Positions 6,001 to 62,546 of a stretch of DNA of 64,000 nt are shown in pieces (positions within the stretch are counted from its first letter, which is position 1; each line of letters opens with the position of its first letter). The notes beneath the pieces were generated by a model, which worked only from the letters and a program-made list of their open reading frames with translations, did no database searches and was not told the origin of the DNA. Both the position numbers and the translations under genes were made by a program. This stretch comes from Perkinsus chesapeaki ATCC PRA-425. Lineage: Eukaryota > Protista > Perkinsozoa. The stretch lies in assembly GCA_013115145.1 (NCBI GenBank), contig JAAPAO010000048.1, positions 1-64,000 of the forward strand, written 5' to 3'.

Positions 6001-7439
6001 TTAGGTGGAAGTAAAAGGCTTAAGGGGGCAAAGGGAGCACAAGTGCCTGTTGAAGAACGAGTGCGAAGTGCTCATTAGTTTTTCGTTTTATTTTCATTCC
6101 AGATAAAACAGCTTCCAATAGCCTGTAGTAGTACGGGGACATTCCAGCATAGACAGCAGCCGAAGTAATAGCTCTGGTGTAACATGCATTATTATATAAT
6201 ATTAAATGATTCACTGCGGTGATATCTATCATATCTGACCATTGCTCAGTTTATTAAGCCTAACTCGGGGCATAATATCCAATACTGTAGGTAGTTATTG
6301 CTAACAATGTGTTGAAGCGCGAGTAGATTTGACATTATAATATAATACTGTACAATGGTATTTTATATAATATAACATTGTTCATATGGATCAATGTATG
6401 AAGCACGCGTCAACCTAAGATGCGGCTTCAGTGTGTCGCTGAGTATGAGGGCCACTATAGGCCGACGCTTGAAGATTATAAGGAATTGAGGAGGGGAATC
6501 AGACCCCAATTTTCATTTAGTTTCAGGAAGGTGAATTGTGGTCCTCATTAGGTTAGTATTATTTCGATTTACCTTTATAATGTTTATAATTCTTCTCAGT
6601 TCATTGAGCCTCCGTCGCAGGAGCCCTCGTCTTTAACAGTTACTATTAAATCCGGGAAAATACGTGTTCCTTCCGGCACTCATTCACCTTACACATGAAG
6701 TCATTTGTTTATATATCATCTTCTGCCAGGCCACCCTTGCCGCCGCCATCCAACCCTGCTACTGTTGTTGAGGAGGAGAAAGAGGATCGACCCTATCGAC
6801 ACGGTTTTGTTGATAAATTCAAGAACAGGAATCCTTCAGGTGGTTTTTATCTCGGTTGAACATGTTCTTAACAGTTGTTGCTCCAAAATATCTTGTCGAG
6901 TTTTTTTTTTCAGTCATCGTAAGACCTTTGGGAAATATGGGATGTGAAACCGTCAAGGTATCGAACAGTACCCTCACCATGGACAACGCTCTAGGAGAAG
7001 TATTATTCTCAATAGTATCAAAACTTGTGCTAGAGGATGCTGGTGAGGTCACATTAAGGAAATACTCTTCAACAGCTGCCGGACAGTTTGTGACGTGACC
7101 AGGCGTCACGTAATTTCCAATTGTCCGACAGCATTGATGTTTTGGTTGTTTTTTATATAAGAGTCGTGCTTCGACTTGTGTGCTGCCGAGGTGTTGTCAA
7201 GGTGTTATTCTAGAAGAGTAGGTAAAGCAAGTACTCCATTTAATGCTTTCTGGAGATATGATTATACGACTTTTATATTGACCGTCAATACGGTAGTCGA
7301 CCCAGGGCCAATGAATGACAATATTACATTACTAATATCGATTGAGATAATTTATTGTGATAAGTCGAGTAGCCACTTTTTTTATCATTACCGAACTGTC
7401 GTGCGCTTGATTAGTATTATTTTAAAATGATAGGCTCGA

Positions 7440-8411
7440 TTGTGCCGTCAACATTGGGAGCATTGTCGACAACCGCAGGGGTCGCTGGAGCATCGGCTAC
7501 AGGTAATGATCAGAAGGAAATTTGGTAGTACTCGGGAAGTTCTTAGTGACTTCGTATCGACCTTTATGATGGTGAAAGCCTGTAATTGATTTCCACTGGC
7601 TTCCATGGACCATTTACCATATCAATGTCTACATCTTACGTGTCTAAAGAGAGCATCCTGTCGACTGTGCAGATAGTGAGTATCTTAGATGTCGTCATCC
7701 GTTCCAATTCCCATACTGCCTTATGTGGAGTAAATGGGCTTTCCTCCTCGTCGCCGTATTGTCTTAAGAAATACCCCTCTATAAAGTGGTATAGGACTTC
7801 AGTTACCCCAGCCCTCCTTATCTTAGGTTCGTATATATTTCACCGTAAGCCAAGGCTGTGTGGGAGGATCGGGGAGTTCCTGTTGCTGGTGTATGCAGTA
7901 TTTAGACTCTCTTTCTTTGCTGGACATACATTACGGGGACGACTTGAGTCTAGTGATGCTATAGAGGAGAGCGATCGGTTAAGAGGTGATGGCAGTTGAG
8001 GCCTTGGCGGTTGGAAAGGTGGAATTCGTAGAAACGCATTTTTGCGGAGACGTCGTGGACAGTACCTCTAGATGGAAGCATAGGCGGCCTTTGGATTCAG
8101 TTTCTTGTACCGAGTTGAACAGTCGAGTATCATCGTTGAGCTCATCCCTGGAAGCAGACACGAGGCTGTTGGATAAAATGGTCCGTTATGTTGGCGGAAT
8201 GGGAATGGATGAGGTATGTGGTTCGACAGGTATCGGGTTCAATTCCCGTGTGATGTGTTTTTGGTAGAATGGGACATCAATGCTGGCGGATCAACAGCGG
8301 ATAGTTGACGATAAGACTGAGGAGTTGAGTGTCGCAAAGCATCGGCGAGATGACTGCTATGAGCGAGCTGCAGAGTGGGAGGAGGTGGGTAGGGCATCAT
8401 CGGCAGCCTAA
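7440..8411 (+). CDS. Hypothetical multi-exon gene; 5' end uncertain, last intron 8214-8267, stop 8409-8411
   Basis: Removing the GT-AG intron 8214-8267 joins ...GGMGMDE to NGTSMLADQQRIVDDK...SSAA* in frame. Confidence 0.5.
8214..8267 (+). repeat. Intron carrying a tRNA 3'-end-like element
   Basis: TCGGG TTCAATT CCCGT GTGATGT G TTTTT at 8233-8262. Confidence 0.65.
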
Positions 8412-13776: not shown

Positions 13777-16700
13777 TCAAGACTGAGCCTGAGTGAACCA
13801 CCAGGGGGAGGAGGAGGAGGACCTGGATCGGCTACATTGGGATTTAGTGATCTGGAGATTGTAATAGGGAAATGTAAAGTGAATTTGATGAGAATAATGG
13901 GCAAGAGCTCAAGAAGGATTGAAGAAAAATCGGGAACGTGATTATCGTCACAAAAAAGTCAAGTCAAATTTTGGTACCGTCGAAGAAAATAGAGCCATAA
14001 AATTGAATTGTGAAGACAATAGAGGACAATCTTATAGAGGAACTGATGTCATGCATCAACCTAAGATACGTGGTTTGGATGCATTGGCTCCAATTAGAAG
14101 TGACGGAACACAGGCAGTTGATCAATCATCATCGGAGCTCCTTGGTGGGGTACAGCAAGATGGTATGGACGCCAAGGATCTCAAGCCATGTTTTGATGCG
14201 ATGTAGAAGGGGGGAGGGGTGAATCAGATAAGTCGGAAATGTGGTATGAGATGAAGTTCTCAGAAGGAATGCTGTTTTCGTTTGGTCTATGAACACAAAA
14301 GTCTGTCCCCGCTATATCATCATGATCGCATTAGAAACAGTTTTCATCCTAGAGTATCTTATGGAGCTGTTGAAAGTGCACTTCGCTCTTCCATCGGCAA
14401 TGCATCTCCTGTCGGGAGTTACGCTACTTTCTTGTATTTGCGAAAGTGTGCCAAATCTCCGCACTGGAACTACATTTATATTACGCTGCAGTCTCCGACG
14501 ACATGGAGAGCACGAACTCCATTTGGGAGGCGCAACTGGCCGAGTCACGAATAATATTCCTATACACCACGTCGTATCGAGGCCGACTATAATGTATTTC
14601 TTGTCTACTGTGTTTTAAAGAAATCGGGAATCTCGCATATAGTTTTCTATCGGACCACAGCATTTCCCGGTCATGCTTCCGACATGCGCACAGTTATTTC
14701 CGAGATACCGCAGGCAAATATCCGGCGCGTCACAATTATTCCCGACCAGCACCCATTTATCCGATTCGGCCATGTGCAATATCCGACGAATACGGTCATT
14801 CTAATATCTGCACAATTCTACATCTCAAATACCCGATAGCCTACTTTTCAATATCCGCGGGCGCTAATCCAAAAGAATCTTCTGCGCAGAAATCGGAAAT
14901 AACAATGCGCATGTCGGAAACATGACGGGGAAATGCTGTAGTTGGATGTACTATAGCTGCTCAGTGGAGTTAAAGCTCGTACTTAGGCTAGGCATTGGTA
15001 TTCATTTTATAATAAGGATTCAACATGCCCCACTTTTAATTTCTAACTCGGGAACTCTACGAACCCAAAATGAATACGATATCATAAAAGGGACATGTTA
15101 CCTGTGTTCCCTCAATAGTCTCGTCATTCTGATAAGATACAAAATAGGTTAACTCGGTGCCTCAATACAGTTGTGGGAAATTTCGTTTTCTTACCATCAC
15201 TCAGTTGACTTAATTCCCCTTTTCATTGGTTGTTTTCCTAATATTGGCAGGCCGCCCACCGCTCAATTGGAAGCCAAGCGTTATCAAGCCTGCTTGAGCC
15301 TTAAAGATATAGCAGCAAGTTCGCCGGAACATTTTGGCCTTTATAAACCTGTTTTCCTACAGCGAGTGTGGACGGTCATACTGGGAGAAGGCCATCGATT
15401 GGTGAGTATTTCATACCATATTTCCCACAACTTTCCTCTAGTCAACGCGCCGTGCTGCTGTCCTTGCTTTACAAGCATCGTTGCCCATTTCTCCACCTGC
15501 ATCGAAGGAGAGCACAGTGGAGCCGAGCGAGTGGTGTGTCTGGACTTTGGCTATCGTCGGGAGAACTTTGGATGACTCAATCCAAGCTGGAGGCCCGTCG
15601 AATTCATCTGTAAAGGAGATGGCTGCCGGCATGCCGCGAGTGAAAAGGACGGAGGCGGCCATACAGGGCAGCTTGATTGTACTGGGCGCTATGGTGGACG
15701 TCGGAGGTCATATTGAGATACTCAAGCGATTGAGTAAGATGGTGATGGTATCTTAGGTCCAACCGTGCGTTCTGATCTGTCATATTGGTTACGGTTAACA
15801 TTACGATATCGTCGGTCGAAGTATAAAAGTGTTGTTCAAGTGGTTGATAGACTTCTGGCCAATTTCGCACAGGCCAGCCCGGAGGAGTTTGCTCTTTGTG
15901 GTGATGAAGCCATTGGGCATTTGATAACCGAAGGTGCTGGTATAGAAGGCTACTGTGGACAAGATGGCAGACCAGCTGCTATCAACTCAGTAAGGGGAGA
16001 CGGGAGAGTAGGATAGTGTAAGGAGTCGAATTGAACTTTATAACAACAAAATTAGTGTAATCAATTATATTAATATAAATAATAAATTACCAATGAAAGA
16101 AATGAAATTAAGTGTCCCTCTGGATACTCCCTCTCGGCATGATTGTGTTACCCGTGGAATGATAGAGGTACTTTGGCTGTCAAATTCTGTTGAAGTGCTT
16201 CGTGGTCTTCCTTTGCTCGTTATGCAGCCTCACTATTTACTACCTTCTCTCGTCCTTATTATTACTCAGTCATATTTTTTATCGTCTTTGCCTGTTGTTC
16301 AGCTCGCTGAAGTCTGTGTGGCGGAGGGATCGGAGAGAATCCTTCCATACGTGAAGAGTATCATTAGTTGTATTGAGTCTGTGTTGGGTGATGACGACAT
16401 TAAAGCAGCTGTTGGGAGGAAGGCTAGTGGAGGTAAGCGTTAGAGGAAGAGGAGGCGGGCCGGTTATTATAATTCAATTTCAGAAGCATCTCCTACGGGA
16501 AGGACGGACAGAATGTATCGACTACACGAGAGCACTCTAGAGTAAGTCCAAATCCTAACTTAGTCACTTCAATAGTTCATCCTCAGGTGTCTGGGTAGAC
16601 TAGCAGAAACTGTTGGTTATGAACTGGGTAAATATTTTGAAGATGCCAATTTATCCTCATTAATATTCTCGGCTGGTTTGACTCCAGCTGTATTGGAGGC

Positions 16701-19700
16701 GGTTTGGGATTGTTGTTGTTATTGTCAACCAGTTGTAAGTGCGGCGGCTCCACCTTCACAGCACCATTATTGTTCCCCAAACTGTTTTACTCTCTCCGGC
16801 GGCGTCAGCGTCATTTCTCACGTTGCAATAGACTTAGGCGAATGGAAGGAATGATGCGAAATTGTGCTCGATTTTTTATCTCTGAAAGATGCACCTTCCT
16901 CTCGGGAACTCCGCGGCTCGGTAGAGAGGTTGTTAAATGATACGTTAGAGGTTATAATCAAACCATCGTAACGATTTCCTCAATTGATGGGTATGACTTG
17001 TGAGCTAGATATCCTCACCATTTCATGCGGGACTTATGGTCAAAAAGCGCGTTTTTGGCTGTTCGGTATTTTCCATATTTTCCTCAAATTTTTCTCAAGC
17101 TCGACAACAGATGTAGCCAGCCACGTGCACACTTTCCCAATCGAACGATGCCATCGTGCAATATCTCCTTTTTCATGTTCAAGGTGTTTTCCATCTTTCA
17201 TAAATCCTCTTAACTTCTTCTTCTATCCCTCAACGACTTATAAAAATTCGAGTCCCATCTCGTATACCTATCTTTTACGTAGGTGAGGAAATAATTCACA
17301 GAATTTTCCACGAAATATTTTTTCGTTTTTTTGTAAGTGGCAATTATCCGTTTCCATATCGTTGTTCAACGAGGAAAAGAACATCTCTGTAAATTGGTGA
17401 TATTGGTGGTTCGCTTTAGTGTTCGGCCTTGCAAACTCAACTGCTCGATACAGTATCGACTATCCTACAGAATGTTACCTCGTGCACGAATCCAACTATG
17501 CTAGCTCCTCAGGAGGAACAACAGGTAGGCGGGAAATTGGTATTGATGGGTCGCCATGACGTGCAGGAGATACTTGGCTGTAGTCTGAGTTGACATGAGT
17601 TGCTATAGTGTCCCTTTCATTTAACTTGCACTGCTAGAGTCGTTCATTTCGCTCCCTTTGGCAGCGAGCTGTCTTTAGGAACATCATATTGTAGGTTATC
17701 TCTATTTAGTCTAACGGAAAACAATTGCGGCTTTTCCTGGTAAAAATTAACCTTCCATCATTTCCCCTTGGTTTTTTATTAATAGGTTTTCTGGTTCAGG
17801 CACACCGATCAAGAACGTTCTCGGCAATGTCAGCTGGTAAGCGGTGAGAATAATCCTATCACTTTAAAGTGCACCTCTTTAGGTACCGCTGCCCTCGAAG
17901 CACAGGCTTCAACAGCAGTACTGGCCATGAGGGCCCTTATCAGTTTTGGGCCCTACGATCCACGAGTGAAGCCCTTCCTGTGTGACACTGTCTTGAGGTA
18001 TGCTCTTCAGGGATATGTTTGCTAATCGGTCGGATTAGTAGAATCCAGCCGAATACGCAAACCAACTACGCTGAGCTATATTCCATTGGATGGCCAGGAT
18101 GCTTTTAACTGCTTAAACTTTACCGACAAATGATTGAAAATTTGTTTTTGAAAGTCTTCGAATGTGCATTCTGTTAGTTCGACAAATGGAAGAGTTCATA
18201 CAGGCAAACATCAAAGATTATGTCTTCTCCGAGATGAATCTCATAATCCTTTTGGTCAAGGATGGTCCTTCCTAGCATTACTCGATTATGTCTTCTCCGC
18301 ATTACGTTATTCTGAGGCCAGATGACTCTTTGTGTAGGTGTTTGGACCATCAACATCCACTCGTCCGTAAAATGGCAGCGAAGACAATCACTAAGTTGCT
18401 CTTGCCGGTCGATCTGCCCACAGACGATGAGAGGGAGAGGAAACCGTCATTTAATGATGAGGTGAGACCATGATAATCGTGCCTGTTACATAGCTGGCGT
18501 GTTGGAGTATCACATTGGTGTCCTCCGCGGAGCCCCACCACAATTTCACGACTCTGAGATTCACGTCAGAAAGTGCTGAGGAAATGTTTTGTCGATTCGC
18601 GCAATATTCCCTAAACTCGTCCCATAGATGTATATAGGGTACCTTATGCGTACCAGCCTAGCTCTGGCTGGTTAAGTCCAGGTGTTTAAGGGATTTCTCG
18701 CTTCCACCTGCTAGCATTAAAAATTGAGTGAATTCACTCGGCTCTATGGAAAGATAAAATGATGTGGATTGAGTTGCTACTGATCGACATTTTGCGATAA
18801 AATGACATTATATCCTTCCGGGCAACCACCGTGATGAGGATTAGCGATTACCTTCACTACTGCAGGAGAAGTTGGGTGAATTTGTGAGCGGTTTTTTCTT
18901 TGTCAGACCCCTCACACGAATGCTTCATCGGAATGTTCGGACACTCAACCCAGTCGAGGGAGACAGATAGTTTTGTGCAAACCGCACCATATAGAAGCCA
19001 TTTCAAGGGTGGTGCAACGCTTGTTAGTTTTAGCGGTTGCAGATACTGATCCGGATATAAGGTGGGTGCTGGGGATCGAACCTGCGTGGTTTGGATGACA
19101 GCTGTTGTAGGTACTCGGTGTTCGACGGTATTGATCGACGATTTGATCCATTCCTTTCGGATCGGACATGTATAGCAGCGATAACTCAGGTAGGCAAGTC
19201 GTGGGTTCGATCCCGGCATGTTGCATTTTTAATAGGCTTTAAATGATGAATCTTTGATTGTGAGGAAGGCAGCGGTGAAGCTCCTCGGAAGGCTCTGTTA
19301 TCATAATCCAGCTTACGTCCTGCCGGCACTGAGAAAGCTTCTTATACAGCTTTTAACAGAGTTGGAATATAATCACGTAAATGGCCACCCGGGTTCGATC
19401 CTCGGCCGGGGCACTTTTCCGTTAGGCTGATCTCGGTGGGGAGGAAGCCGCCGAGTTATTGTGCGATTTGCTTTCAAAAGCTGGCACCCATATGAGCCCA
19501 TATGTTCTGGCAGTCGTCGAGGCGGTTGTATCGAAACTTAGTCGACCGGAGCCGATTCCACCGCGGTGAGAAAATGCTCTTGCCGGGGATCGAACCAGGG
19601 TGGATCCTGTCGCCACAGATACACATCACTCCTGTTGGAGGCTTTAGGCCAGTTGAGCGATATTTCCGGGCAGTCGATTTTATCGAGCGGGATGATCGAT

Positions 19701-22700
19701 GATATACTTCAATTGCTTGTAGATAACATTCAGGTAGGTTCCGGGTTCGATCCTCGGTAAGGGTATTTTAGGATACCAGATCGGGTGGCGAAGGTGACCA
19801 AGCTGTACAATGGGACAAGAAAAAAGAAGTCGCATATAGGTGGGTCATGGACGGGAAGCTCTGGGGAATTTACCTTTGGTCTTAAGTGTGAACTCTCGAG
19901 CCAAAATGGACGCCTAACCAGTTGAGTATTTTTCACATCTGGAAATAGACTTTACAGCGAGTCACACTTGTTAGGAACTATACTTTTGTTCAATGATTGT
20001 GAAAAGCTGACGGAGACGATGCCAGAACTGTCACGTCGGGCATGCGGCCTGTACCGGGCCGCGGCTATAGGAGAAGTCGTACTTCTGGATTGGGGTTCAG
20101 ACAGCATAGGTCATGATGAATCTCATTAAAAACTGATGAAAGCTTGTTCAATTTTTTGCACCATTCGCTCCGGAAGTTGATTGTGATGATGAGCAGGACT
20201 CCACAAAGACACATCGGGCATACCGGGCCGGATTAGAATCGTCTTAGCTTGATTAACAGTGAATTATGGCTGTTGCTAGTGTGAATAAAAAGCTCTTATT
20301 ATTGGGCTCTACCGAATAGCTTGAATTATCGCCCTCCTGTTCAGGACCCTATCCCGCGTGATTGAGAACACTGGTTTGGTGGTTGTCCCCTACGAGAAGT
20401 TCCCTCCACTTCTACCCTATATGATTGACTTTCTAAGAGCTGATGCTCAACACACCGCCCATACGGCAGTCAGGCGTCAGGTGCTGCCGCAACCGGGGAT
20501 CGAACCCGGGTGGATCGATTGCTAAATCAGGCTATCCGAGCGATAGGCACATTAGGCGCCCTCGACCCGAGCAGGTTTGATGCGCTGAAGCATATTGCTA
20601 CCATACCAGCGATTGATACCGCCTCTGCTGGCCAGCTGGCACAACAACAACACGACTCGAGATCCTGTAGGGGATAGATGCTTGTTTGCTTACACTTGCT
20701 TTGTTGATAGCAGCGACTTTGGCAACTCAGAGCACTATGGTGGCTGTGTCACACTCACACGGTCTTCCTCCTCCTCCTCCTACTGGAGGAGGACCAAGCC
20801 CTGGGGAAGCAGCGGCATTCGAAGCAAAACCATCAACCGTTGGTGAGAATGTCCTTATTATGTCATAATGTTGTCTTATGGGTCGTATCCTCACAGCAGA
20901 CTAACATAACACACATTTGTGAATCTTGGTGGCTCAATACTGTAACGCCGTCAGAGCTAGCTGCGGTCAGAAAAGGTGTACTGTTGAGAGTTTTGAAAAC
21001 CTTACATTAACCGCGTAGTTGATATTATATATGTACTTCAAAACTGTTATATGTTGCCGTCTGAATGTTTTGCTGGAAAACATTTCTGGGGGAATTTCTC
21101 CGAAGTTCGATCGATATGTGGGCGTTGGTTGAGCGGTGTTACGGATGGTATTACGGTAGATTGAATGATACATCCTTTACTTAGGCACTGTGGTGGCTGG
21201 TGCCGGGTGTGGTGGTGGTGGTGCACCTTACGCCTGCTATGGGTTCACTGCAAGTATTGCTGCTGGTATGGATCTTCAACAACAACTGTTAACGGTTATG
21301 ATACAAATGGCATCTGAGGAGGTCAGTTGTTGACTTAGTCTTCACATCCGCTTTCTGACTTCAACGTTTAATATATTATTTATTTACTCTGCATACCATA
21401 AAGTCCGGTTTACTGCTGCACTTATCGGTTATGTGGGCTCTTCTTGGATTTACGCTATAACATTAACCCTCCTCCTATCAGACTGCATAGTCACCTCACA
21501 CTGGTCAAATCGGTTTTCGTAGCAAATATTATTATCTAGTTTTATAGACGAGCAAATGCGGGGATTCCGGCGGTGCTTATTAACAGATGTGGAAAAGTGA
21601 ATCTGAATCATCACAAATTCTGGTATTGGTTAATTTGACAACTCGCCATATTGCATGATAGTTTTATAACTGTCCCTTTTTGTGTGCTGTCAGGGTGTCA
21701 GTGGTGATGGCTGCAGTGGTAGTCCTCCAGATGGGATGAGTCAGCAGCGTGACGGTAAGTGCTCATGTGGATACGTTATCATCCATACCGGCTTTCCCAT
21801 TTAGTTGATCAAAATGCGGGGCAGCAGCGTCTGGCTCAGGCGAGTGCGGCTCCAGCTTGGGCGGCGAGTGGAGCAGATAATCCGCAAACATGCAAGTAAG
21901 GCGTAGGAATTGAACCTGGTCACTCGCATGAAAGTCTAACATCATAACCGTTCAGGTGGCTGTACACTTCTCATGCTGTGGCAACTTTATTAAAGATGCT
22001 TTGTGATACATCGCTCCCGAGCGACTATCACAGTCATGTCGTCGATGCACTGATGACTATTTTTCAACACCTCGGTCGTCAAGCGGGAGGATGTGTTATG
22101 CCATTCCTACCCCAAATAATGAACTCGATCATATCAGTGGTACAACGCAGCCCCGCCGACAGCTCGATCGCCCACGAGCGAGCGCCACTTCTTCGACATC
22201 TTGCCTATCTGGTCAAAGTAGCAAACGCCAAGCAAATAGCGCCTTATCTGAAATCGATATTCGACTTGGTTGCTGCAGTATGGCCGCCAGAGCCTGTGCG
22301 CGGCGCTGGTGAGATTTGTGAGAAAGTTGGTATAAATTACATTTATTTGTAGTCCAAGTGCCGCCGCCTCCTCCTCCACCTCCTCCACCATCAATCCTGT
22401 CGAATGGTGAGCCTTCGGGTGGTCAGGGCCCAGGCTCACAGTTGGTCATGGTGGCCGCATTACCGACTACATCACCGCCGAACTCGGACAGAGTTGATCT
22501 CATCCTGGCAGCGCTCGCGCTACTTGAAGAGATATGCAAGCAACATCACCACGAATCCAAGGTGGGATTCGAACCCACGACCTTTCGATTGTTAAGTTCA
22601 GGTCTACATGGGTCCCCTCGTTCCGCGAATTCTCCACCTGTTATCGCCTGACCGCGGCCTCGGGTACAGCAGCCAGGATAATGGTGTCATAGCGAGCAAA

Positions 22701-25700
22701 GTTCTCTCGTCATTGGTGGTGTTCGGATCGACTATCACGGAGTTTATGCATTTAGTCATACCGACACTTACCAACCTTTTCGACTATACGCCTTCCAACT
22801 ACGCCAATGAAGGTGAGCTTGGAGGAGAATCTTGTAAATGATAAACTGTCTGTGGATGGGTATCGTAAAGTAGGTCTTGTGGACCTTGTTCTTCGATAGA
22901 GCATCTCGCAAAGCATCAGGCGATCCATCAAAAGCATGTGTTCCTTAAATGACTTTGAGTATTATTTGTGAAGACACGCCATACTCAGTAAAGGCTACCG
23001 GTCAGCTAATAATAATGATCGACAACTTTTCCTAGTGTGAAGCAGTAACAAGAGCTCTATCTTTCCAAAGTGCCGATCAACTATCCGAGTAGCCGGAAAC
23101 ATTTCGAACGAAAGCATATCCCTCCCCGGGTTGCTCTGAATGGGGATATGCGACACAGGATGCTCATCGGCAACCTCAGCTGCTCCAAAGTTGATTATCA
23201 TGTTAAAGCGTTTTATTACATTATAAAAAGTGCTGTGAAACACGAGCGGCGAGAAGTGTGTATCATAATGAGAATACAGTTATGAAGTCAAGGATTAGGA
23301 TCTTACTGGTTGCAATTTGTAAAAAGAAGAAACTGTCCTACCCGGGGATCGAACCAGGGATCTTTTGCTAATGGAAAATCTACGAAATTTTTCGTCGTCT
23401 TGCATTTGCTAGAGTCAAGTCTCACTTAAACATTATTCAGGTCACTCAGTAGTGCCTCCTCCGATGCATATCCGCATTAAAGCCATCAAAGTTGTTGGTG
23501 CTCTATCCAAGCAAGTGCCATTCGCACAGTTCTCCGGTCGGATTACTCATCCTTTGGTCCGAATACTCGACAACGAAAGCGCCCCGCTTGAGCTTAAGCA
23601 CGTTGCCCTGGGCTGCCTGGGTCAGTTGGCTCGCTCCTTCGGCGAAGGCTTTGCCATCTACGCACCGCTAATAAATCGTACCTGCATTCGACACGGCCTT
23701 CCAGCTGTGTTTGATACACCGGAGGGGAAGAGCGAATGTCGAGCGTTCAATCGAATGGTTGTGTCACCGAGATTTGCCCCACCTGGTCGGATGCATTCGA
23801 GGAGCCTGTCCGATGGTGGTGACCTATGTGGCATACCTGACACTACGATTGCTCCGGGCTCACAGGTGAGGCAGACAGGTTTGCCGTATTGCAATTTGGT
23901 CCATAGTTTTTTCCTTGCTACTGTCAGGGAGCCATCTGGATACTGTAGATTAGTTTCTGAGTACAATTGTGAATATCTTTTTATTTGGTCCAATTTGAGC
24001 ATCAAACATCCATTTGACATCACAGCTGGGATTTATATAGTTGTATTTTTTGAAATAATAGTTTTGCTATCTTATGAGGGCCGGAGATTGGCCTGTCCAA
24101 AATTCGCCTGATTCCGGTTCACTTTTTAATATTATACAATCCCCTTTATTTCCTCTATATATCAAGTATTATACAATCCCCTTTATTTCCTCTATATATC
24201 AAGTATTATACAATCCCCTTTATTTCCTCTATATATCAANNNNNNNNNNNNNNNNNNNNNNNNNNNNNNNNNNNNNNNNNNNNNNNNNNNNNNNNNNNNN
24301 NNNNNNNNNNNNNNNNNNNNNNNNNNNNNNNNNNNNNNNGTATTATACAATCCCCTTTATTTCCTCAGATATATCAAGTATTATACAATCCTCTTTATTT
24401 CCTCAGATATGTAGTTTTGTCCCAGATCACCCAGCCCTCCACATGGCTTGGGAAGCCAGTCAAAGATGGACTAAAGATGAATGGGTTTTGTGGATGAAAA
24501 GGATTTCACTTGAGATTCTGCGAGAATCGCCGAGCGAGTCTTTGAGGGCGTGCTGGTCTGTGGCACAGATGCACCCGCCTGTCGCAAAAGAACTATTTCC
24601 CGTTGGCTTTTTGGCTACATGGACGTCATTACAGGTGAGTTATTTTCTATCTTGCATGGTTGACGTGAAGATACTCTCACGAGCTTGGGCTGCTATTACG
24701 AATGAATCCTTATCGAACTCTGTATACAAGTATCGATGTTTGACTTTTTGCTTTTTTGTCCGAATAAATTTCGATTTTTTTCTCGACTTTTCCGAAATAC
24801 TTTTATTATTTTCCTTCAGGACAGCTACCAATGTTTCCTCCTCCGCTCCCTGGAGCTGGCTCTGTGCTCACCCCAGCTGCCGCCGGACATCCTGCAGACT
24901 CTACTGCAGCTGGCGGAATTCATGGACCGATCGAACGTGCCGCTTCCGATGGAGAATAGAATGCTGGCAAGTTTGGCGGAGAAGTGCCATACTTATGCCA
25001 AAGCTTTGAGGTGAGGAGAGCGAAGACTCATGGAGGAGTATCTAAGGTTGAAGGACGGCTTTCATGTTTGTTCTCCCAGTAGGAAACTTTTTTCCACCAG
25101 ATATCCTATTATATTACTTCACTAGGATTGAATATTCTATTAAACATTTGTAGTGTCGTCTTCGCTCTAAGAACGCTTCGAAAATCCGCAAATTCGAGTC
25201 CAATATTTTCGCCTGTCGTACCGATTCACTTTCCTGAGCGAACTGTACCAAATTAAGTAGTCTCACAGAGCTGAGCCTAGAAGGGACCAACGAATGCATC
25301 ATCATCCTCCTCCGAGAAGTATCTCATGCTCCTTTATATTATAAACTAACATGAGTTATAAACTACTTGGTGAGCTTATGTGATGAGATGGTATCCTATC
25401 AGATACCGGGAGATGGAGTTCAAAGCATCACCATCGGTCACTTGTGTGGAGGCGTTAATCTCGACAAATATGCAACTTGGTCAAGTTGTCGAGGCACAAG
25501 GCGTGCTGCAGTATGCGCAAAGATACCTTGGTGATGAGCTTGAATTGAAGGAAAGTTGGTATGAGAAACTACAATGTTGGGACGAGGCGCTCGAGGCCTA
25601 TGAGCTTCGTCAAATGGAGGAGCCCGGTAACCTCGACGTCACCACTTCACGCATGCGATGCCTTCGTGCTCTGGGAGAATGGGAACGTCTTGGAAAGCTT

Positions 25701-28700
25701 TGTGAAGCATCTTGGGACAATTGCTCGAAGATTGATGGACAGTCAGCTAGAAGGCATAGATTGGCTATGGCGCCGATGGCTGCTGCGGCGCAGTTCAATC
25801 TGAGGGATTGGAACAGTATGGAAAAGTAAGCATTCGCTTACCTCGTAGGCGATCGTTCTGAATGTAACTAGTTAGTAATTAGTGATTCAATAACTTAAGT
25901 AGTGGCCTACATATCGGGTGTCGGAATAAAGCTTGCTCAAGCTGGCTGAGCACATCGGTGGTGATGCTGCTCAGCCGATTAGAAACGACGCAAAAGTCTA
26001 AGAGGAATTGCACTAGCGTTTGGCGTCACTCGCCACGATATTGGTCAGATACGTTAAAGTGTTGGAGGGTGTGTCGGTATCTGATGTTATTGACGCTGGA
26101 GGGACAATTGACACAATCGACACCACTGCCTCGAATTCATCGGTTACTTCATCTTCATCTACACCAAATGAGAGTGATAATGATGGCATGTCTTTCGAGG
26201 GCAGCTTTTATGCTGCTATTTTGGCTATACATAAACAACAATATGAACGAGCATTCAAGCTGGTAAGCTCTACGGCTACTTCAAGTACAAGTTGAAATAA
26301 TCCTATATTTTCAATCAATATTGTCCGTTGCCACATGACGGCTAAGATCATACAAGTCATTCCCAAATTGGGCTAATGTTTCGCCGTTTGCGATTCGCCC
26401 TTGAATTTCGACCTGATTGATATATTTACTATTTAATAATCACTTATTTTTCCAATAGAATTTGAGTCTCTATTTCCCTCTGAAGTGAACGGAACGGAGG
26501 TCCACAAGATCCAAAGGCGGAATGCTGCACGTCCTACGGCTTCATTGATTCTGGACTCAATTTCAAGATTTTTTGATTTCAATTGGATTTATTTTTTTTA
26601 AATATAAATATCGTATATCATGAAGAGTTCGGCTAATCTTGAGGTTGGCTTAGTAGCTGGCGATGCTGTTCACTAGATATGCTATTCACATACCAATAGT
26701 CTTGAGGTTGGCTTAGTAGCTGGCGATGCTGTTCACTAGATATGCTATTCACATACCAATAGTCTTGAGGTTGGCTTAGTAGCTGGCGATGCTGTTCACT
26801 AGATATGCTATTCACATACCAATAGTCTTGAGGTTGGCTTAGTAGCTGGCGATGCTGTTCACTAGATATACTATTCACATANNNNNNNNNNNNNNNNNNN
26901 NNNNNNNNNNNNNNNNNNNNNNNNNNNNNNNNNNNNNNNNNNNNNNNNNNNNNNNNNNNNNNNNNNNNNNNNNNNNNNACTATTCACATACCAATAGTCT
27001 TGAGGTTGGCTTAGTAGCTGGCGATGCTGTTCACTAGATATACTATTCACATATCAATAATTCTTAGATTCACAAAAGTCGTGACAGCCTCGATGGAGAG
27101 CTCACAGCTTTGATTGGCGAAAGCTACACACGGGCTTACAGATGCCTTATTAAAGTACAACAACTCACTGAGCTTGAAGAGATAATAAAGTGATTACGAA
27201 AAATGTAAAGATGAAACGCTTCGCTCCGCCTCCTATTAGATACAAGCAATTGGAGGATACTGGGGATAATCAGGGATGCTCCATGATGAGAGATATGTGG
27301 ACACGTCGATTGATGGGATGCCGACCGGATGTGGACGCGTGGCGATCTTTGTTGGAGCTGAGGTTGGTATCTTTTACTATCGCACTCGGAAGATTTTATT
27401 CAGGACGCTTGTTGTGCCTCCACGAGAGGACCTTACAACATGGCTTAAATTTACAGGTGAGTTTATAACAATCTGGCAGCTGATTTAAAAGCTCTACTGA
27501 AGATAACACAGTATACATTTATGTAGGAATATCTTCAAGATCGATTTACCACTCAGATGAGCTGTATAAAGCATATTACCGCGCAACTATTTTTATACCT
27601 TCCCGTCATCATTAATGCCCATACCTTCATAAACCTCTTCCTACTTCTCTCATACTTTTTATTATAATATTTCCATACCTTTTCATACTTTCATGCATTT
27701 TAATACTTTTGAATATTTTCGTACCATGTTGTTGTTGTTAAATGATGTCATTCCTGTTCAGCACTCTGTCGTAAGTCCGGTAGACTATCACTTGCAACTA
27801 AGACGATCGATATGCTTCGAGCCGACAACACCTTAAAACGTGATCCTGTTGTTACGTGGGAGTATTTAAAGAATCTTTATGCCAATGGTAGCAGATGGGA
27901 GGCTCGAGATATGTTACAGGTAGGGAAGGAGGAGGATGGTGACGTCGATCGCAGCAGCGGCGGAGCGAAGCGTTTTTCAAACCCAAAGAAAATATTAGTT
28001 CGTTTGGGGCTGTCGATGTCAAGCGGGTTTGCAGCTCTTTCATCGTGAACTGTTCAACTTTACTCGGCTTGGTCAGAAAAAAGACTCATTTCATATTAGT
28101 ATGTTATGTCTGATAATATATCACTAATACGTACATCATACAAGTATTGACAAGTATTAAATATATTTAAATAATTATAGTAAATATTAATATAATAATT
28201 AATAATAAATTGAATAAACACTCTACGGTTGGAGGGAACTCAACTCCTCCGACCATGAAATAGGGCTTCCCACAATTGTTCAAATGTGCTAGCCGTTGGC
28301 ACGTCGCTGTTTATGCCAACTCATACGGCGGCAATTCTTCTGGAGTCAAAGACATTGCTCCTGTAGGGCCGAAATATGAAAGAGACTTTGATATAGAATA
28401 CGTTATTGAAGCTGCTCTGTGTAAATGGATCCCATAGGAAATAATCGATGCTCCTTTATACCTCCCCGATCTCCAGCATAGCCAATTTCTTTTCAGTCGT
28501 TCCTTCAGCAACAAGGTGCGGTGGTTAATCCGGACCTAATAGTGGATGTTAGCTCTTACGCTCCATCACCGCTGTTTTTATCACCTGAATCGAGAAGGGT
28601 TGGTAGCCCTGGAGGACGGAGGAGACGCCGAGCACCGAGTTCATACTCTCAAACACAGCAGCAGCAGGTTGGGGGATCACTCCACCCGAGTTCGATCCTC

Positions 28701-31700
28701 GGATACGGTATTTTCAGGTTCCCATTGAACTCCTTTCGAAATGTCATCTCAAAATGGGCCTCTGGACCAAGGACCTAGCGGAAGACTATCTCCACGTGCG
28801 ATCAGCAATTTCGTGGCGCAGCGGTCATTTATCTGGCAGGCATCCTTCTATGAAGATGAAGGCGTTCTTGAGAATGTTCTCGGATGGTTTGAAAGTGCCA
28901 TAAAACTGAATCCGAAATATTATAAAGGTAAACATGAATCGCTTCGCTCCGCCTATAATTTGGTATTTCAGCCTGGAACGCCTGGGCACTAGCAAATTAT
29001 AATGCAGTGACCTACATAGAGAATCAACAACACAGAGAATCGGCTGCATCAAGTCCGAAGGAGATTGGGAATGAGGATAAGAGAAGGAAGGCACCAGCAG
29101 CAGCAGCTCCACAATCGCAAACTTCAGGTTTGCTTGCTCCCGCGTTCGATCCCTGGCAGGGGCAGTTTTGCAGGTATAATCGAAGAATCGAAACCATACC
29201 TGTTGAATGCACTACGAGGCTTCACAAAATCTATCATTCTTAGCGATCCGCCTCAGTTGCAAGTAAGAGATGAAACGTCACGCGCCACGAAATGCCGTTG
29301 CAGGACGTACTGCGGTTGATAACGCTTGGGTTTAAATACAGCGGTGACAGCGATCTTGAACTTGAGCTGCAGAAGGGCTTCGATCAGGCACCATTGGTGG
29401 CATGGTTACAGGTGAGTAACAGATCGATCAGGTGATCGATTTGGTATCGATTTGGTATTTATTGGTATCGATTTAGGTCACTCCACAGCTCATTGCCCGG
29501 TTGCGGAGCAAACGACAGTCCCTTCGGACGACGGTTCATCAGTTGCTTTCACGTGTTGGGAAAACGTAAGAAATTTCATGGCGCAGTGAAATATTTGATC
29601 CATCATTATTTTTAGTGGTATGAACTCCTTTTGTAGCCAGTATGAATTTATTGATGCCGGCTTTTCCCCGGTTCGATCCCTCGTAGCGTCATTTTATCAA
29701 CCTACGTGAAATGATAAAACACCTGCTTCTCTGCAATGTCTCCTCGGTGTAGTTGTTGTATAATTCTTCCCCATTAGATACCCTCAAGCTTTAGTGTTCC
29801 CTTTAACAGTAGCCACTCGTAGTAGTGTCAGTACCTTTGTTATCAGCAGCAAACGATTGTTACAGGAGATATCGGTATGTCTTTTGTTTCCATCTGGATA
29901 GATTATTGTGTATCAGGTACACCGCAAAACTCTTGTCCAACAAAGTCAGTTGGTGTCGGCGGAGCTCATTAGGATATCTATGCTTTGGCATGAGATATGG
30001 TAGCCAAGCATACTGTTACACCTGCTGGCATTGTCGATATCTCTGTGATGGATTATCGGTGCTTGGCATTGTTAGGAGATATAGTAGATCTATACTCTAA
30101 CACTCTCAGGAGATCTCTCTGGGCGTCATATTATTTACCATGAAATCAGTACTCTACTTTATTTCTGTCAACATGGAACCAGTGGTGAAGGAAAATGAGC
30201 CTGAGTTGAAATTAGTTAGTTGTGGGCTAGTGAGCATTTCTATTTTGGAGAGACACATCGGGAATGATTGCAATACCAGCAATATATGGGAGCATCTATG
30301 TTCCTCTATGACTCCCTGAATTTGTCCCGTAGATGTCGGACATCAAAAGTATCTTTGATGCGCATGCGTGCAAATGATTGTGCTGCTATTGATTTTCTTC
30401 AGGTGTGAAGCTCTAGAGGAGGCCAGTCGATTGTATTATGCCGAGCATGACGTAAATGGTATGATTGAGGTGCTGAAACCATTGCATGAAATGATGCTTC
30501 AAGGACCTCAAACGCTAAGGTGTCATTTTTTTCGCACTGTGAAGATTTTCAAGACATGCGTATCTTTGCCCAGAGAGACATCCTTTACTCAAGCGTTTGG
30601 CCGTGACCTTCGCGAAGCCCTTAAATGGATACACGCCTACGAGAGGGAGGAAGCTCGACACCAGAAGGATGACGTAGATTTTTGCGCTGATGGAGAGTCC
30701 TCGAAAAATGATGACAAACGACTCGACCTTATCGACCAAGCTTGGCAGATCTATTATAAGGTTTTCCAAAAGATTCACAAACAGGTCAGTAATGAGGTAT
30801 CTACTGCAGTCCACTGCTGCTTGCCTTAGAGACATCTTTTGAGATGTTTTTCTTGAATTTCGATTGGCTCCTGCATCGCTCGGCATGAATCAGTGTGTTG
30901 AGGAAACTCGGGCGAGGGTACCAACACACATTCCAACACCGAATGGGAACCTTACACTAATAAGCATGAATTTAGAGCAGTCACAATACAGTAGAGATAT
31001 CCATGTGGGAACACTGCCTCGTAGGTGTTGGACGGCTCGCTGAATCCGTGATGATATGATAGGTTTGAGTTTTGAAATCAGTACCAATCTGATAAAATGA
31101 CTTTTCAAAATTGAAAGGACAAGAAACATATTAGCTGGGACTCTTTCATCGTCCCAGTTGGGCTTGGAAATACGTGGACTCCTCCTTCTCTGTCTTTGTA
31201 TAAAACGCTCTTCAAACGAAACCCGAGCCGATCAAAGCAAAGTCAAAAATCATACCGGATCGGTGATGTTAGTCAAGTCTTGAATCTCACACGAGAGAAA
31301 CCAAGATGCTGCTGCTGGTCCTCAGCACCATCCGCCTATCAGGTGCAAACATTATCCCATCTTGATCTGCAATATATTTCACCGATGCTTCTCAATGCTC
31401 GAAATCTCGAATTGGCAGTCCCTGGAACTTACACGCCTGAGAGAGAGGAAGCTGGTGATCTGGTCACTATATCGTACTTCAGCCCCAGCATTGATGTAAG
31501 GCGGAGCGAAGCGATTCATGAAAACCGTTTTGCCAGATAATAGCGAGTAAGCAAAAGCCGCGAATCATCCACATGAGAGGCTCCGACGGTCGAAGCTACA
31601 AATTCATTTTGAAGGTAAGACCGCCGTGTGGTCGACGAGAGTTGATGGGGCATCCTTCTCATCAGGGTCACGAAGATCTGAAACAAGACGAGAGAGTGAT

Positions 31701-34175
31701 GCAGTTGTTTGGTTTAATTAATAGTCTTGTTGCTGGGCAAGCTTCGAAGTCGACTAAGTTCCAGGAGATACCGGCAGCAGGTATGATAGGAGGAATCTTT
31801 CGCACTGTGTAGATTTTCTGGATTCAGCTGTACGTGGTGGTATGGTTAATGTTGGTTCGCCAGCTTATCAACAGATTTACAGTGGTGGTAAATACATATC
31901 AAATGTGAACCAAGTTTACAACTCATTGAGGGTAAGTAGAAGCTACTAATGAAATCGATCACGTGATCGATTTAGATTCAAACCTATGCCGTAGTGCCTT
32001 TATCGAATAATTCTGGTCTGATTGAGTGGGTGCCTGGGTCTGATACGATACATAAGCTCATCAAAGACTATCGGGATGCCAATAATATACCACTTAGTGT
32101 TGAGTAAGTCAAGTACCACCACAAACTAGTCACTCGCAAGAATGGCATGTTTCAATCGTTTGAGTTGAAATGCATCTTTTTTACGGAAAGATTCGAATTA
32201 ATTAATTATTACGGAATTATTAACCGACGATTATAGCTACAATTAATCTAATTATTCGATTATACTCTTTCCATTAATTCCTACTTTTCTGCTTACCACG
32301 ACTTCAGGTACTCCCTGATGAAAAGTATGTACGGTCGCTGTGAGGAGCTATCTTTGCTGCAGAAGGTCGAAGTCCTTCGATATGCTTTGGATAACACTTC
32401 AGTGAAAACAATGCCTTTCTTGTCGTTTTCGTGACTTGCTTCATTTCTAGGGTGACGATCTAGAGCGTGTTATGTGGCTTCAAAGCCGTAACAGTGAGGT
32501 TTGGCTTAGACGGCGAGGCAACTACTCAAGGAGTCTGGCGGTTATGTCTGTTGTCGGGTAAGCCGGTGTAGACGACATGATGGACTTGGAAGTGTTGTAA
32601 GCTGTATAGGGTTTGAGGACGAGTATAATAATAGGAATTTAACACAGCACCACTGCCTCTTGAAGGTTAGTAATTCAGTATCATTTCTTCAGTCTATACT
32701 TTACACAATATCTTTTTGTATCACTGCGGGCATTGCTTAACCCGCAGCTTCCACCAATACCTTTAGAGTCGTAATCTCTCTCCACATCGATTCATTCATC
32801 CCAAGCAAGGAAACGAGAAGACGGATCCCAAAAAATATTCCTTCTGTTGACAGTGGTAGCTTTGATGGGAGCTTTCAGTTACGTTTTGGGCCTCGGCGAT
32901 CGGCATCCTTCAAATATAATGATCGAGCAGGAGACAGGTAAAGTTGTGCACATCGATTTCGGTGACTGTTTTGAAGTTGCAATGCTGAGGTAAGTTAATA
33001 AAAAGATTTAAATCACTACTCAAACATCTCAGGGAGAGATTCCCGGAAAAGATTCCCTTTCGTCTGACGAGGATGTTGGTGAACGCATTGGAGGTATCTG
33101 GTGTGGAAGGATCTTTCAGACGGACTTGCGAAAAAATGGTGAAATGCCTCGGCAGGGAATTAATGATTTCCTCGAGTTCAGATGCAACTACTGCGTACAA
33201 ATAAAGATGCTGTAATGGCGATGCTCGAAGCCTTCGTATTCGATCCTCTCATCACATGGCGTCTGATGCCGACCAGGTAAGGCAGCCATCAGCACCTTTA
33301 TAAACTCTGATGGGAGCGGGTTGAGTTATTTCTTTCGCTGCTGTCGACGGCGCTAATTCGGAATTAAAAACCTGACAGATTGCGACAATTTCGTGACGAT
33401 ATCTGACGTGTGCGTGCGTACAGTTTCCTTGCATGTTTGCATTCAGACCATTCGAGAGCCCCGCCCAAAAGAAGGTAACAGTAGCTGAGGGTTCAGCTGC
33501 GGGGGCTGCAACTCGAAGGGCCTCAGATGCCAGCGCTAAAAGTATGTCTACCGAGCTTGTTCAATTTCATTTTACTCCTTTGTAGGCCAAAGTGGCGTGT
33601 CTGATGCTAGTGGTGAACATCAGGAGGAAGAAGGATCGCAGCAGGAGAGTGCTCAGGTAGGTATTCTTCTTGCTGCCATCTTGGTATCACACTTGATTTG
33701 GCAGACGGATTCTAAACGTAAAGATCGAAGTGATGGCAAGGTGGAGAACTACGCCGATCCGGTGCCCCGACCTTTGCAGAAATTCGATGTCGGTGGAGTT
33801 GCTGGTAGGCTGCTAAAATGAACATCATTCGGCGTTAGTTCGGCGATTTCAGGGCAAGGTGATCCCCATCTGGCCTCGGTAAGAATTAAAGTAGCACGGC
33901 AGCGAGAGTTAAGACATGTGTTGGGTCCGGAAGGACTGTTGGCAAATCAAGAGGAATTACAACACCATGCTAGAATAATTGTTGATCGTGTTCTCACCAA
34001 GCTCACCGGAACTGATTTCAATCATGGACAGTAAGTCGTAGTCGAACTTTAGTTTCTATTGTTGAGCAACGGCAGGTATATGTCGGTCGAAGCACAAGTG
34101 GAACGACTGATCGAAGAAGCGACCTCTTACGAGAATCTCTCACAGTGTTACGTCGGATGGTGTGCTTTCTGGTGA
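13777..34175 (+). CDS. TOR: Target of rapamycin (TOR) PIKK kinase, many introns; start approximate
   Basis: HEAT exons ([21 protein letters not shown]; [13 protein letters not shown]), FAT ([12 protein letters not shown]; [12 protein letters not shown]; [12 protein letters not shown]), FRB ([18 protein letters not shown]), kinase (ELAVPGTY; [19 protein letters not shown]; GDRHPSN; [11 protein letters not shown]; PFRLTRM) and FATC ending [12 protein letters not shown]. Confidence 0.97.
14658..14938. mobile_element. MITE-like element in a TOR intron (Tc1/mariner/pogo-type termini)
   Basis: ~46-bp terminal inverted repeats CAGCATTTCCC(G/C)GTCATG(C/T)TTCCGACATGCGCA..GTTATTTCCGA with about four mismatches. 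Flanks are CA|CAG...CTG|TA, consistent with a TA target duplication with one mutated base. No ORF inside. Confidence 0.8.
19062..19771 (+). repeat. Five consecutive TOR introns, each carrying a tRNA T-arm/B-box element
   Basis: Introns 19062-19110 (element on -), 19190-19235 (+), 19377-19425 (+), 19566-19618 (-) and 19734-19771 (+). Boundaries are fixed by in-frame TOR homology. Confidence 0.9.
20481..20530 (-). repeat. TOR intron with an antisense tRNA 3'-end element
   Basis: Reverse complement GATCCAC CCGGG TTCGATC CCCGG TTGCGGC A; perfect 5-bp T-stem. Confidence 0.85.
22562..22601 (-). repeat. 40-nt TOR intron that is almost entirely an antisense tRNA 3'-half fragment
   Basis: Reverse complement ...AATCGAA AGGTC GTGGG TTCGAAT CCCAC: variable loop plus a perfect T-arm. 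Confidence 0.85.
23321..23366 (-). repeat. tRNA 3'-end element in a longer TOR intron
   Basis: Reverse complement AAAAGATC CCTGG TTCGATC CCCGG GTAGGAC A GTTTCTTCTTTTT. Confidence 0.8.
24130..24406. repeat. 37-bp tandem repeat spanning an assembly gap (N 24240-24339)
   Basis: Unit TATTATACAATCCCCTTTATTTCCTCTATATATCAAG on both sides of the gap, inside a TOR intron. Confidence 0.95.
26636..27060. repeat. 63-bp tandem repeat spanning an assembly gap (N 26882-26978)
   Basis: Unit AATAGTCTTGAGGTTGGCTTAGTAGCTGGCGATGCTGTTCACTAGATATGCTATTCACATACC, about four copies before the gap and one after, inside a TOR intron. Confidence 0.95.
27190..27239 (+). repeat. TOR intron with CGCTTCGCTCCGCC motif; near-identical core to AFG2 intron 61446-61496
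   Basis: TACGAAAAATGTAAAGATGAAACGCTTCGCTCCGC here versus TACGAAAAATGTAAAAGAAGAAACGCTTCGCTCCGC. Confidence 0.85.
28668..29777 (+). repeat. Cluster of TOR introns carrying the three intron motifs
   Basis: 28668-28717 T-arm(+); 28796-28839 AATTTCGTGGCGCAGCGG(+); 28928-28971 GGCGGAGCGAAGCG(-); 29128-29173 T-arm(+); 29263-29303 TTTCGTGGCGCGTGAC(-); 29566-29777 A-box-like(+) plus T-arm(+). Confidence 0.85.
31496..31536 (+). repeat. TOR intron with GGCGGAGCGAAGCG motif
   Basis: gtaAGGCGGAGCGAAGCGATTCATGaaa; 22 nt are the exact reverse complement of part of intron 28928-28971. Confidence 0.85.
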
Positions 34176-34569
34176 TTCATAATTCTGTCAAGTTTTTGTG
34201 TTATTCCATTTCTATCATTCTTTCCTGTTGTGTCGTAACTTGCAAACTTGTCACCAGCGAACTGCCTTCTATGCCAGGTCCAAGCTCCTCGACGGTATCA
34301 ATGTTTCCATTGCTCGATTCGATCAGAGACACTCTAAAGTGATTGACTTATTGAGTTCCTTTCAGTACCAGATTTAATAGATTTACTCCTCGCAATGCAA
34401 CGAAATCTAAGTACGATCGACTCTTGAATAAGAAAGATTGCGGGCTATTGAAAACTAAGCAGCTGCCGAACACTAAAAACCATCAGTTCGAGCTTGATGA
34501 AAAAACCGAATATTCTACTAGGGTGCGCAACAAATACGAATAAATATGCAGCTTCACAGAAGACACTGC

Positions 34570-35455
34570 TTAACTTCACTTGTAGAGGGCCATGTATATC
34601 TCATCGCCTTGTGCTGAAAGAATACGGTGTCAATCCATGAGCGTTACTCCCGAGGCCATCCTTTCCTGGCTTACTCAGAACTTTAATGAAACCCAGCCTT
34701 TTATAAAGCTTGATGGCGCCTATATTCGTATCTTCAACTTGTAAGACCACAGCAAGGAAGTCAGGCGTGCTCTTGCCCTCAAAAATCAGTCTTGAAGTGT
34801 GTGATAATCTTCGTGGCTTGAACAGGTCTCATTCTCATCGGCTCGAAGAAGGGTGGTTTTTACTATGAGACCGAGAGACCTTCTTACCAAATTAATAATA
34901 TATTCCAGAAGATTGGTAACCTTTACCTTGACTCTCGCTAGCAACGGCAACCTAAATAGCAGTAGTCTCATGAACGGAAACCCACTCTGCCTCCACCTGG
35001 TGTATGAATCCAAAGATGCCTTTCGTCTTTTTGGTTCTTCCTGATAAACCATATTAATAGTCGTTATCGATTATTAATAACCGCGTTGACGTATCGAAGT
35101 CAACCGCTAATCTACTGTATATTCTCGAATAAGTCAGCGCGAACCTACATTTTCGAGCGAACGGCTTTTTCCACTTTCTTAGAAAGTGACTGATCCATGG
35201 TGGCGATGATGAAGCCAACAACAGTCTGATGACAAATTACCACGGATGAAGGGAGCGTACATGGGGCATACATGAGGGACCTTGTCCGAGTCAACTGCGA
35301 CATAGCAAGGAGGATCCTTCCTAGTTTGACATTGAAAGCGGAGCCAAGACGGAATCTCGGGGAAGTTGTCGCCGTTTTCATAGTCACGGTAATCAATCCT
35401 TCCCAAAGTGAGGCATGCCAGATAGGCAACTAGTGGGATGTAAGATTTAATCGAG
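34570..35455 (-). pseudogene. Signal-peptide GNAT-like gene, copy 1 (ATG appears changed to ATT; in-frame TAG)
   Basis: Homologous to copies 2-4 (DPPCY|TVVGFII; GIFGFIHQVEAEWVSVHETTAI*VAVASESQGKG; TNMGAIKLYKRLGF-like last exon). Confidence 0.6.
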
Positions 35456-38519: not shown

Positions 38520-38557
38520 CAATGAGAAATACATGGCCCTCTACAAGTGAAGTTAGG
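38124..38557 (+). pseudogene. GNAT-like copy 3: inverted, -1 frameshift and internal deletion
   Basis: A C5 run replaces C6 in the DPPCY codons. The 5' part is fused at CAC(A/C)AGG directly to sequence homologous to the 3' end of copy 1 (38516-38820 is the reverse complement homologue of ~34310-34615). Confidence 0.75.

Positions 38558-57159: not shown

Positions 57160-62546
<5,387 letters not shown>

Follow-up and report, generated by a model that had tools for sequence, protein, structure and literature searches.

B-box-only binding sites for TFIIIC at which RNA polymerase III (Pol III) is absent are an established class, known as the extra TFIIIC (ETC) type (PMC12409998). Perkinsus genes contain many introns, mostly under 100 bp (PMC3101222), and the tRNA genes of P. 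marinus, which are unusually high in copy number, contain Dada transposons (PMC3706591). The introner elements of Amoebophrya are of another kind than the introns described below (PMC7789003). A literature search returned no description of tRNA-derived introns in Perkinsus. The window analysed here is the whole stretch of 64,000 nt that forms positions 1-64000 of contig JAAPAO010000048.1 of Perkinsus chesapeaki (assembly GCA_013115145.1), and it contains the gene of the TOR kinase. Five consecutive introns of this gene each carry a relic of the 3' end of a tRNA gene. With moderate confidence, the B-box within such relics is considered from its sequence to be kept as a DNA-level site, most likely an ETC-like site for TFIIIC.

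The protein of the GenBank TOR model, P0159, has the Pfam domains mTOR_dom, FAT, FRB, PI3_PI4_kinase and FATC. Exact mapping of its residues onto the DNA yields 58 GT-AG introns, 35 of which are 70 nt or less and are called short. The locus retrieved via this protein (L002) matches the window at 100% identity, with a record range that coincides with the coordinates of the window. The initial annotation, made from the sequence alone, had placed the boundaries of five introns of 49, 46, 49, 53 and 38 nt by TOR homology. The same introns are present in the GenBank model, and their excision leaves one open frame with the text of TOR N-terminal HEAT repeats. None of the five has a length divisible by 3, and the exons flanking them match consecutive residues of a TOR homologue. 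Both the GT-AG borders and the restored continuous homologous frame are those of spliceosomal introns. The five introns are read as genuine because the frame, the TOR homology and the GenBank model agree; judged by these, they are real spliceosomal GT-AG mini-introns. No RNA run was found to contain the stretch, the two RNA runs of the species included. In a second DNA sample of the species the whole stretch 18954-19825 is present, including all five introns, with one single-nucleotide polymorphism in an exon. Apparent 'joints' in the alignment of this sample were rejected as deletions; they come from contigs from elsewhere that match two T-arm copies.

Each of the five introns contains a T-arm with the loop TTCGATC, followed by a 7-nt acceptor strand, the discriminator A and a T-run. 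The five strings and their orientations (-,+,+,-,+ in introns 1-5) are found in the sequence as annotated, and their anatomy, with exact spacing in all five, upholds the proposed derivation from the 3' ends of tRNA genes. In general form the relics consist of a T-arm (5-bp stem and 7-nt loop TTCRANY), a 7-nt acceptor strand, the discriminator and the T-run of a Pol III terminator at exact spacing. The remainder of a tRNA gene, the D-arm, the anticodon arm and the A-box, is missing, and the relics comprise the 3' 25-35 nt only. ARAGORN found no tRNA genes in the 64-kb window, and Rfam scans at the gathering cut-off and at E up to 10 gave no match to a tRNA family; the sole T-arm match in these scans was a tmRNA T-arm at 22562. 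The relics are therefore too short for family models. No A-box was detected upstream of the relics beyond chance. Since there is no tRNA gene, no Rfam family and no A-box, the elements are 3' ends only. They end at the T-run of the gene and do not carry CCA, and the source is therefore genes or primary transcripts rather than mature tRNA.

In the sense copies (introns 2, 3 and 5) the T-run lies 5, 7 and 2 nt from the end of the intron, within the annotated range of 2-7 nt, and it also acts as a pyrimidine tract immediately ahead of the 3' splice site. Where a relic is antisense, it is its 3' end that borders the GT donor or provides it. The GT of intron 1 is complementary to tRNA positions 71-72, in agreement with the annotated position-72 equivalent. 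A minihelix, in which the 5' end of the intron pairs with the acceptor strand, was considered and rejected: intron 2 allows it partly (4 of 7 pairs), and introns 3 and 5 do not fit.

The five elements are one instance of a window-wide class and are not peculiar to these introns. The 9-nt core GTTC[GA]ANNC is present in 13 of the 58 TOR introns and in 10 of the 35 short ones, against a single match in 7,971 exon bases. In the window GGTTCGATCC occurs 8 times, where 0.06 occurrences are expected, and structured T-arms number 13 against 1.3 expected, in about 7 sense to 6 antisense orientations. In an alignment of 24 relics anchored at the T-arm, 17 have A as the discriminator and 15 have C at position 72, and the 5 nt after the discriminator are T-rich in most. 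The T-loop is regionally uniform: TTCGATC is found in 10 of 12 TOR copies (19069-29683), TTCGAAC/TTCGAAT at 45-60 kb (45337-59266) and TTCGATT/TTCAATT at 5-8 kb (5529-8237). T-loops in the TOR gene of a congener are mostly TTCGAAT.

The conserved part of the relics is the B-box and not the hairpin. In the alignment of the 24 relics the information is highest across tRNA positions 52-62, among them 52, 59, 60 and 62, which had no part in the selection of the copies. The outer stem pairs are formed in only 11-14 of the 24 copies, near the chance level of 37.5%, and the inner pairs 52-62 and 53-61 in 21 and 23 copies, respectively. RNA folding of nine introns gave z-scores between -1.7 and +0.6, and in only two of the nine was the fold of minimum energy the canonical T hairpin. 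The constraint thus has the shape of a B-box. The relics match the B-box consensus GGTTCGANNCC and have no A-box, as is found in ETC-like sites.

The congener used for comparison is another Perkinsus species, represented by a Logan contig from SRR12548988 (L001) that covers the window from ~21,670 to 34,300 and starts 3' of the five introns. Its TOR protein is 83-90% identical over the aligned parts. The 4-fold degenerate sites are 29.6% identical between the two species, and the neutral sites are therefore saturated. Exon-by-exon mapping onto L001 gave 35 pairs of orthologous introns in the 3' 60% of the gene, and the intron position is common to both species in all 35 pairs. Conservation was judged with the 11-mer consensus, since a 6-mer core proved not strict enough for long introns. 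With one mismatch allowed, GGTTCGANNCC is present in exactly 4 of the 35 mapped L001 introns, the chance being 0.006 per intron. These four are the orthologues of the short T-arm introns 21896, 22562, 28668 and 29128, and the orientation is the same in each. The initial annotation had called for the B-box to be compared with neighbouring intron bases in related TOR genes. In all four comparable short introns, which lie in the 3' part of TOR, the B-box is kept at saturated divergence and the flanks are unalignable. The five introns themselves lie outside the compared region. The suggestion that the mixed orientation points to the DNA level rather than to a splicing signal is strengthened by these four orientation-matched orthologues, together with the nearly even orientation ratio, the information peak at the B-box and the unremarkable RNA folds.

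Other sources were sought for orthologues of the five introns. A 58-amino-acid open reading frame used as a query for those of relatives gave no match. A contig of GCA_013115865.1, reached via P0104, was set aside, being only 846 nt long, as was L003, an intronless TOR gene of another organism. In the TOR gene of Vitrella brassicaformis (L004, 26 introns) one of the 58 Perkinsus intron positions coincides (30785-31342) and one more lies within ~1 codon. By this comparison of sequences, TOR intron positions are almost completely turned over between the Perkinsus and Vitrella lineages. With 35 of 35 positions shared with the congener and 1 of 58 with Vitrella, the mapped introns arose in the perkinsid lineage before the split of the two species.

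In the explanation favoured here, the 11-bp B-box (tRNA positions 52-62) would have been retained over time in either orientation and without an A-box. It would work on double-stranded DNA, because it is the B-box and not the hairpin that is kept, in either orientation and with no A-box. The predicted B-box-only TFIIIC sites would sit in the sole non-coding space of a long, exon-dense gene. Conservation of the B-box presumably reflects selection. TFIIIC would be the reader of the motif by analogy with ETC sites, and the same analogy makes a TFIIIC role plausible. Because no A-box lies upstream, a B-box-only site is compatible with the earlier idea of a TFIIIC platform within the gene.

Several observations weigh against this explanation in its simple form. 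The behaviour of the five introns is extrapolated from the four compared introns of the same gene, which they presumably resemble. For the relics in two long introns, 23342 and 29667, the orthologous L001 introns have no counterpart. Within each of the orthologous pairs W28668/L3822 and W29128/L4461 the stems and acceptor strands differ considerably, and the acceptor 8-mer TAGCGTC-A is found at W29671 and at L4461, which belong to separate introns, one in each species. Intron 27363 carries another motif class in P. chesapeaki and a sense T-arm in L001 (3314-3370). Simple selection on GGTTCGANNCC leaves the TOR-specific TTCGATC loop unaccounted for. The stem differences, the shared acceptor strands, the swap at 27363, the uniformity of the T-loop and the run of five suggest that turnover, local copying or homogenisation takes place on top of selection. 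A local component remains, as the run of five and the gene-specific T-loop variant are without an explanation.

The alternative that survives best, although it is judged rather unlikely, is that the relics are neutral debris. Fragments of the 3' ends of tRNA genes or pre-tRNAs would be captured repeatedly, for instance to fill DNA breaks or through reverse transcription truncated at the 5' end. Within genes, only those fragments that are removed by splicing would persist. The apparent conservation of the B-box would then be due to young or re-seeded copies. The presence of the T-run and the lack of CCA agree with such a source, as do the varied, tRNA-like acceptor strands. Identical acceptor strands recur in unrelated introns: CAAGAGC-A of intron 4 (19576-19582) is found again in the relic at 53785, and TAGCGTC-A is shared as described above. 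The class swap at 27363, the orientation of another motif flipped between species at 31781 and the absence of the two long-intron relics from the congener point in the same direction. So do near-copies in other parts of the genome: second-sample contigs from elsewhere match three of the 34-nt elements with 1-3 differences, and intron 2 has one 34-nt near-copy and intron 5 several. Against neutral capture stands the finding that, at saturated 4-fold sites, the B-box is present in exactly four orthologues in the same orientation and in none of the other 31 introns, which makes random re-insertion unlikely. In addition, the upstream GAAAGGTC is common to W22562 and L945, which indicates that this pair is one old copy.

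Somewhat more doubtful still is local serial gain or copying, in which the TOR copies would descend from each other or from one nearby source in either orientation, by templated insertion or short-tract conversion, so that the cluster of five is local history. The run of five has a permutation p = 0.013, and six are in a row among the short introns (p = 0.0035). Of 12 TOR copies, 10 have the loop TTCGATC, which is seen in 0 of 7 copies in other parts of the window (p = 0.0007); at 45-60 kb the recurrent loop is TTCGAAC. Introns 3 and 5 have an identical 17-nt T-arm. The single position shared with Vitrella among 58 indicates that the introns were born in the lineage. The acceptor strands of the TOR copies, however, are almost completely different, and all mapped positions are older than the divergence of the congener, whose neutral sites are saturated. 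A tRNA gene is absent from the 64 kb, and neither terminal repeats nor consistent target duplications were seen. The recent local serial intron gain put forward in the initial annotation is thus not borne out, the 35 mapped positions in the 3' 60% of the gene being common to the congener and the motif being window-wide.

The least probable alternative is a function in the pre-mRNA, where a T-arm-like RNA hairpin would help very short introns to be spliced or be recognised by a Pus4/TruB-type pseudouridine synthase, by RNase Z, or by La on the U-run: the frequent inner pairs, compensatory stem changes in W28668/L3822 and a T-run located where a pyrimidine tract is needed speak for it, but about half of the copies are antisense, with the loop GAUCGAA, and equally conserved, the outer stem pairs are near chance, the folds are no stabler than shuffles with the T hairpin seldom the minimum-energy structure, and the inner pairs belong to the B-box consensus itself.

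Table 1. The TOR gene and the tRNA-derived relics of the window.
Feature	Positions	Strand	Description
TOR kinase gene	15619..34175	+	GenBank model, P0159, 2656 aa, 58 introns
Intron 1, 49 nt	19062..19110	+	Antisense tRNA relic; T-arm 19069-19085
Intron 2, 46 nt	19190..19235	+	Sense relic 19201-19230: T-arm, ATGTTGC, A, TTTTT; then AATAG
Intron 3, 49 nt	19377..19425	+	Sense relic 19389-19418: T-arm, CCGGGGC, A, CTTTT
Intron 4, 53 nt	19566..19618	+	Antisense relic 19571-19599: AAAA, T, GCTCTTG, T-arm
Intron 5, 38 nt	19734..19771	+	Sense relic 19741-19769: T-arm, TAAGGGT, A, TTTT; AG directly after
TOR intron, 50 nt, next short one after the five	20481..20530	+	Antisense T-arm relic 20493-20509
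TOR intron, 60 nt	21896..21955	+	Degenerate antisense relic GGTTCAATTCC; congener orthologue has GGTTCCATCCC
TOR intron, 40 nt	22562..22601	+	Antisense relic, T-stem supplies GT donor; B-box identical in congener
T-arm relic	23342..23358	-	Inside long intron 22813-23440; counterpart absent from the 55-nt orthologous intron of the congener
TOR intron, 50 nt	28668..28717	+	Sense relic 28686-28702 + ATACGGT, A, TTTT; orthologue has perfect B-box
TOR intron, 46 nt	29128..29173	+	Sense relic 29140-29156 + CAGGGGC, A, GTTTT; orthologue B-box, one mismatch
T-arm relic + TAGCGTC, A, TTTT	29667..29683	+	Inside long intron 29566-29777; absent from congener orthologue
Further relics of the same grammar	5529, 8237, 45337, 49601, 51939, 53785, 59266		

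The T-arm is not the only recurrent sequence in these introns. Five modules, the T-arm, CGCTTCGCTCCGCC, ATTTCGTGGCGC, TTCGCACTGTGAAGATTTTC and ATCGATCACGTGATCGAT, were recognised; one or another of them is present in 20 of the 35 short TOR introns, as against 0.9% of shuffles. Several of the non-tRNA modules are kept in orthologous L001 introns, once in flipped orientation. Perkinsus mini-introns thus contain a wider system of modules, to which the tRNA tail belongs. On a broader and quite tentative view, mini-introns would be carriers of DNA modules of at least five conserved classes, the tRNA-tail B-box being the commonest, and would place thousands of sites for TFIIIC or other factors in gene bodies; capture of tRNA tails, with some local copying, would be one engine of the massive intron gain of the lineage.

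Sequences close to CGCTTCGCTCCGCC are found in both orientations at 27190-27239, 28928-28971, 31496-31536 (antisense) and 27920-28496. This module is kept in the congener orthologues with unalignable flanks (L001 3144-3190, 4182-4307, 6050-6095 and 2218-2274). The module close to ATTTCGTGGCGC also occurs in both orientations, at 28796-28839, 29263-29303 (antisense) and 25826-26048, and is kept in orthologous introns, the L001 coordinates being 3962-4093, 4615-4660 and 7679-7723; the last of these has the module where P. chesapeaki 33139-33181 does not. Sequences close to TTCGCACTGTGAAGATTTTC are present at 30520-30573, 31781-31827 and 27363-27403, and in L001 at 5570-5632 and 6339-6384. In the congener the module is reversed at the orthologue of 31781-31827, and a sense tRNA T-arm occupies the place of 27363-27403. 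The palindromic module close to ATCGATCACGTGATCGAT, with the centre CACGTG, is located at 29412-29476 and 31932-31975 and is kept in the orthologous L001 introns 4769-4822 and 6489-6540.

Some other features of the window were recorded. Tandem repeats at 24130-24420 and 26634-27059, the second with a period of ~63 nt, flank runs of N at 24240-24339 and 26882-26978 in long TOR introns, and these runs are probably gaps left by the assembly within repeat arrays. A weak match to the Rfam family mir-6132 (29 bits against a gathering cut-off of 112, E = 0.0026) lies at 24054-24146, beside a repeat array in a long TOR intron, and is probably due to chance. A stretch immediately downstream of TOR has copies on both strands a few kb on, 70-79% identical (34304-35447, 36517-37407 and 38163-39952), pointing to a small group of genes or gene fragments that arose by duplication.

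The Perkinsus lineage is related to dinoflagellates, and a spliced leader is trans-spliced onto its mRNAs; it is not known to have well-defined promoters. If the B-boxes are bound, there would be far more intragenic TFIIIC sites here than in any organism studied, and a new way of organising chromatin or transcription in this dinoflagellate-related lineage. With only 1 of 58 positions shared with Vitrella, intron gain has been large, and the tRNA tails would be a tangible source of some of it that can be dated; they make the origin of these introns testable. In practical terms, they account for tRNA-like matches inside genes, which is useful to gene prediction in Perkinsus.

Four known systems resemble the relics in part. 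The Dada transposons of P. marinus belong to the same genus, with its many tRNA gene copies, and are mobile DNA tied to tRNA genes (PMC3706591). They are, however, 4.7-11 kb long and inserted at specific sites of tRNA genes, and show no link to the 30-nt relics in introns. Short interspersed elements (SINEs) of tRNA origin are likewise tRNA-derived, carry a Pol III B-box and are scattered in genes in both orientations. TFIIIC binds relics of such SINEs. Unlike the Perkinsus relics, SINEs start with a tRNA-related head at the 5' side that bears both the A and the B box, and continue with a body and a tail; the relics comprise the 3' 25-35 nt of a tRNA gene only, end at the terminator of that gene and come from several different tRNAs.

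Introners, known from Micromonas, Aureococcus, fungi, dinoflagellates and Amoebophrya, are similar in that related sequences fill many introns in a lineage with massive gain (PMC7789003, PMC11282704). They are near-identical copies of whole introns, in which terminal inverted repeats and target duplications are frequent, and most are of recent origin. The Perkinsus relics, in contrast, share a tRNA-derived core of 17-30 nt only and differ in their flanks. The mapped 3' positions are common to the congener, and the second sample has the same five introns; by these properties the relics are not introners.

The fourth system comprises the ETC sites of yeast and human, together with the clamp sites that organise chromosomes in fission yeast; these also have a B-box only, with neither an A-box nor a full gene. 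Those sites are conserved between species, independent of orientation, bound by TFIIIC without Pol III and active as barriers or organisers (PMC12409998). The known ETC sites are few, eight in yeast and ~1,800 in human, and the putative Perkinsus sites occupy about 1 in 4 short introns of one gene. ETC sites are mostly intergenic or near promoters. The Perkinsus sites, unlike them, lie inside spliceosomal mini-introns and are accompanied by the acceptor strand, the discriminator and the terminator of the parent tRNA gene.

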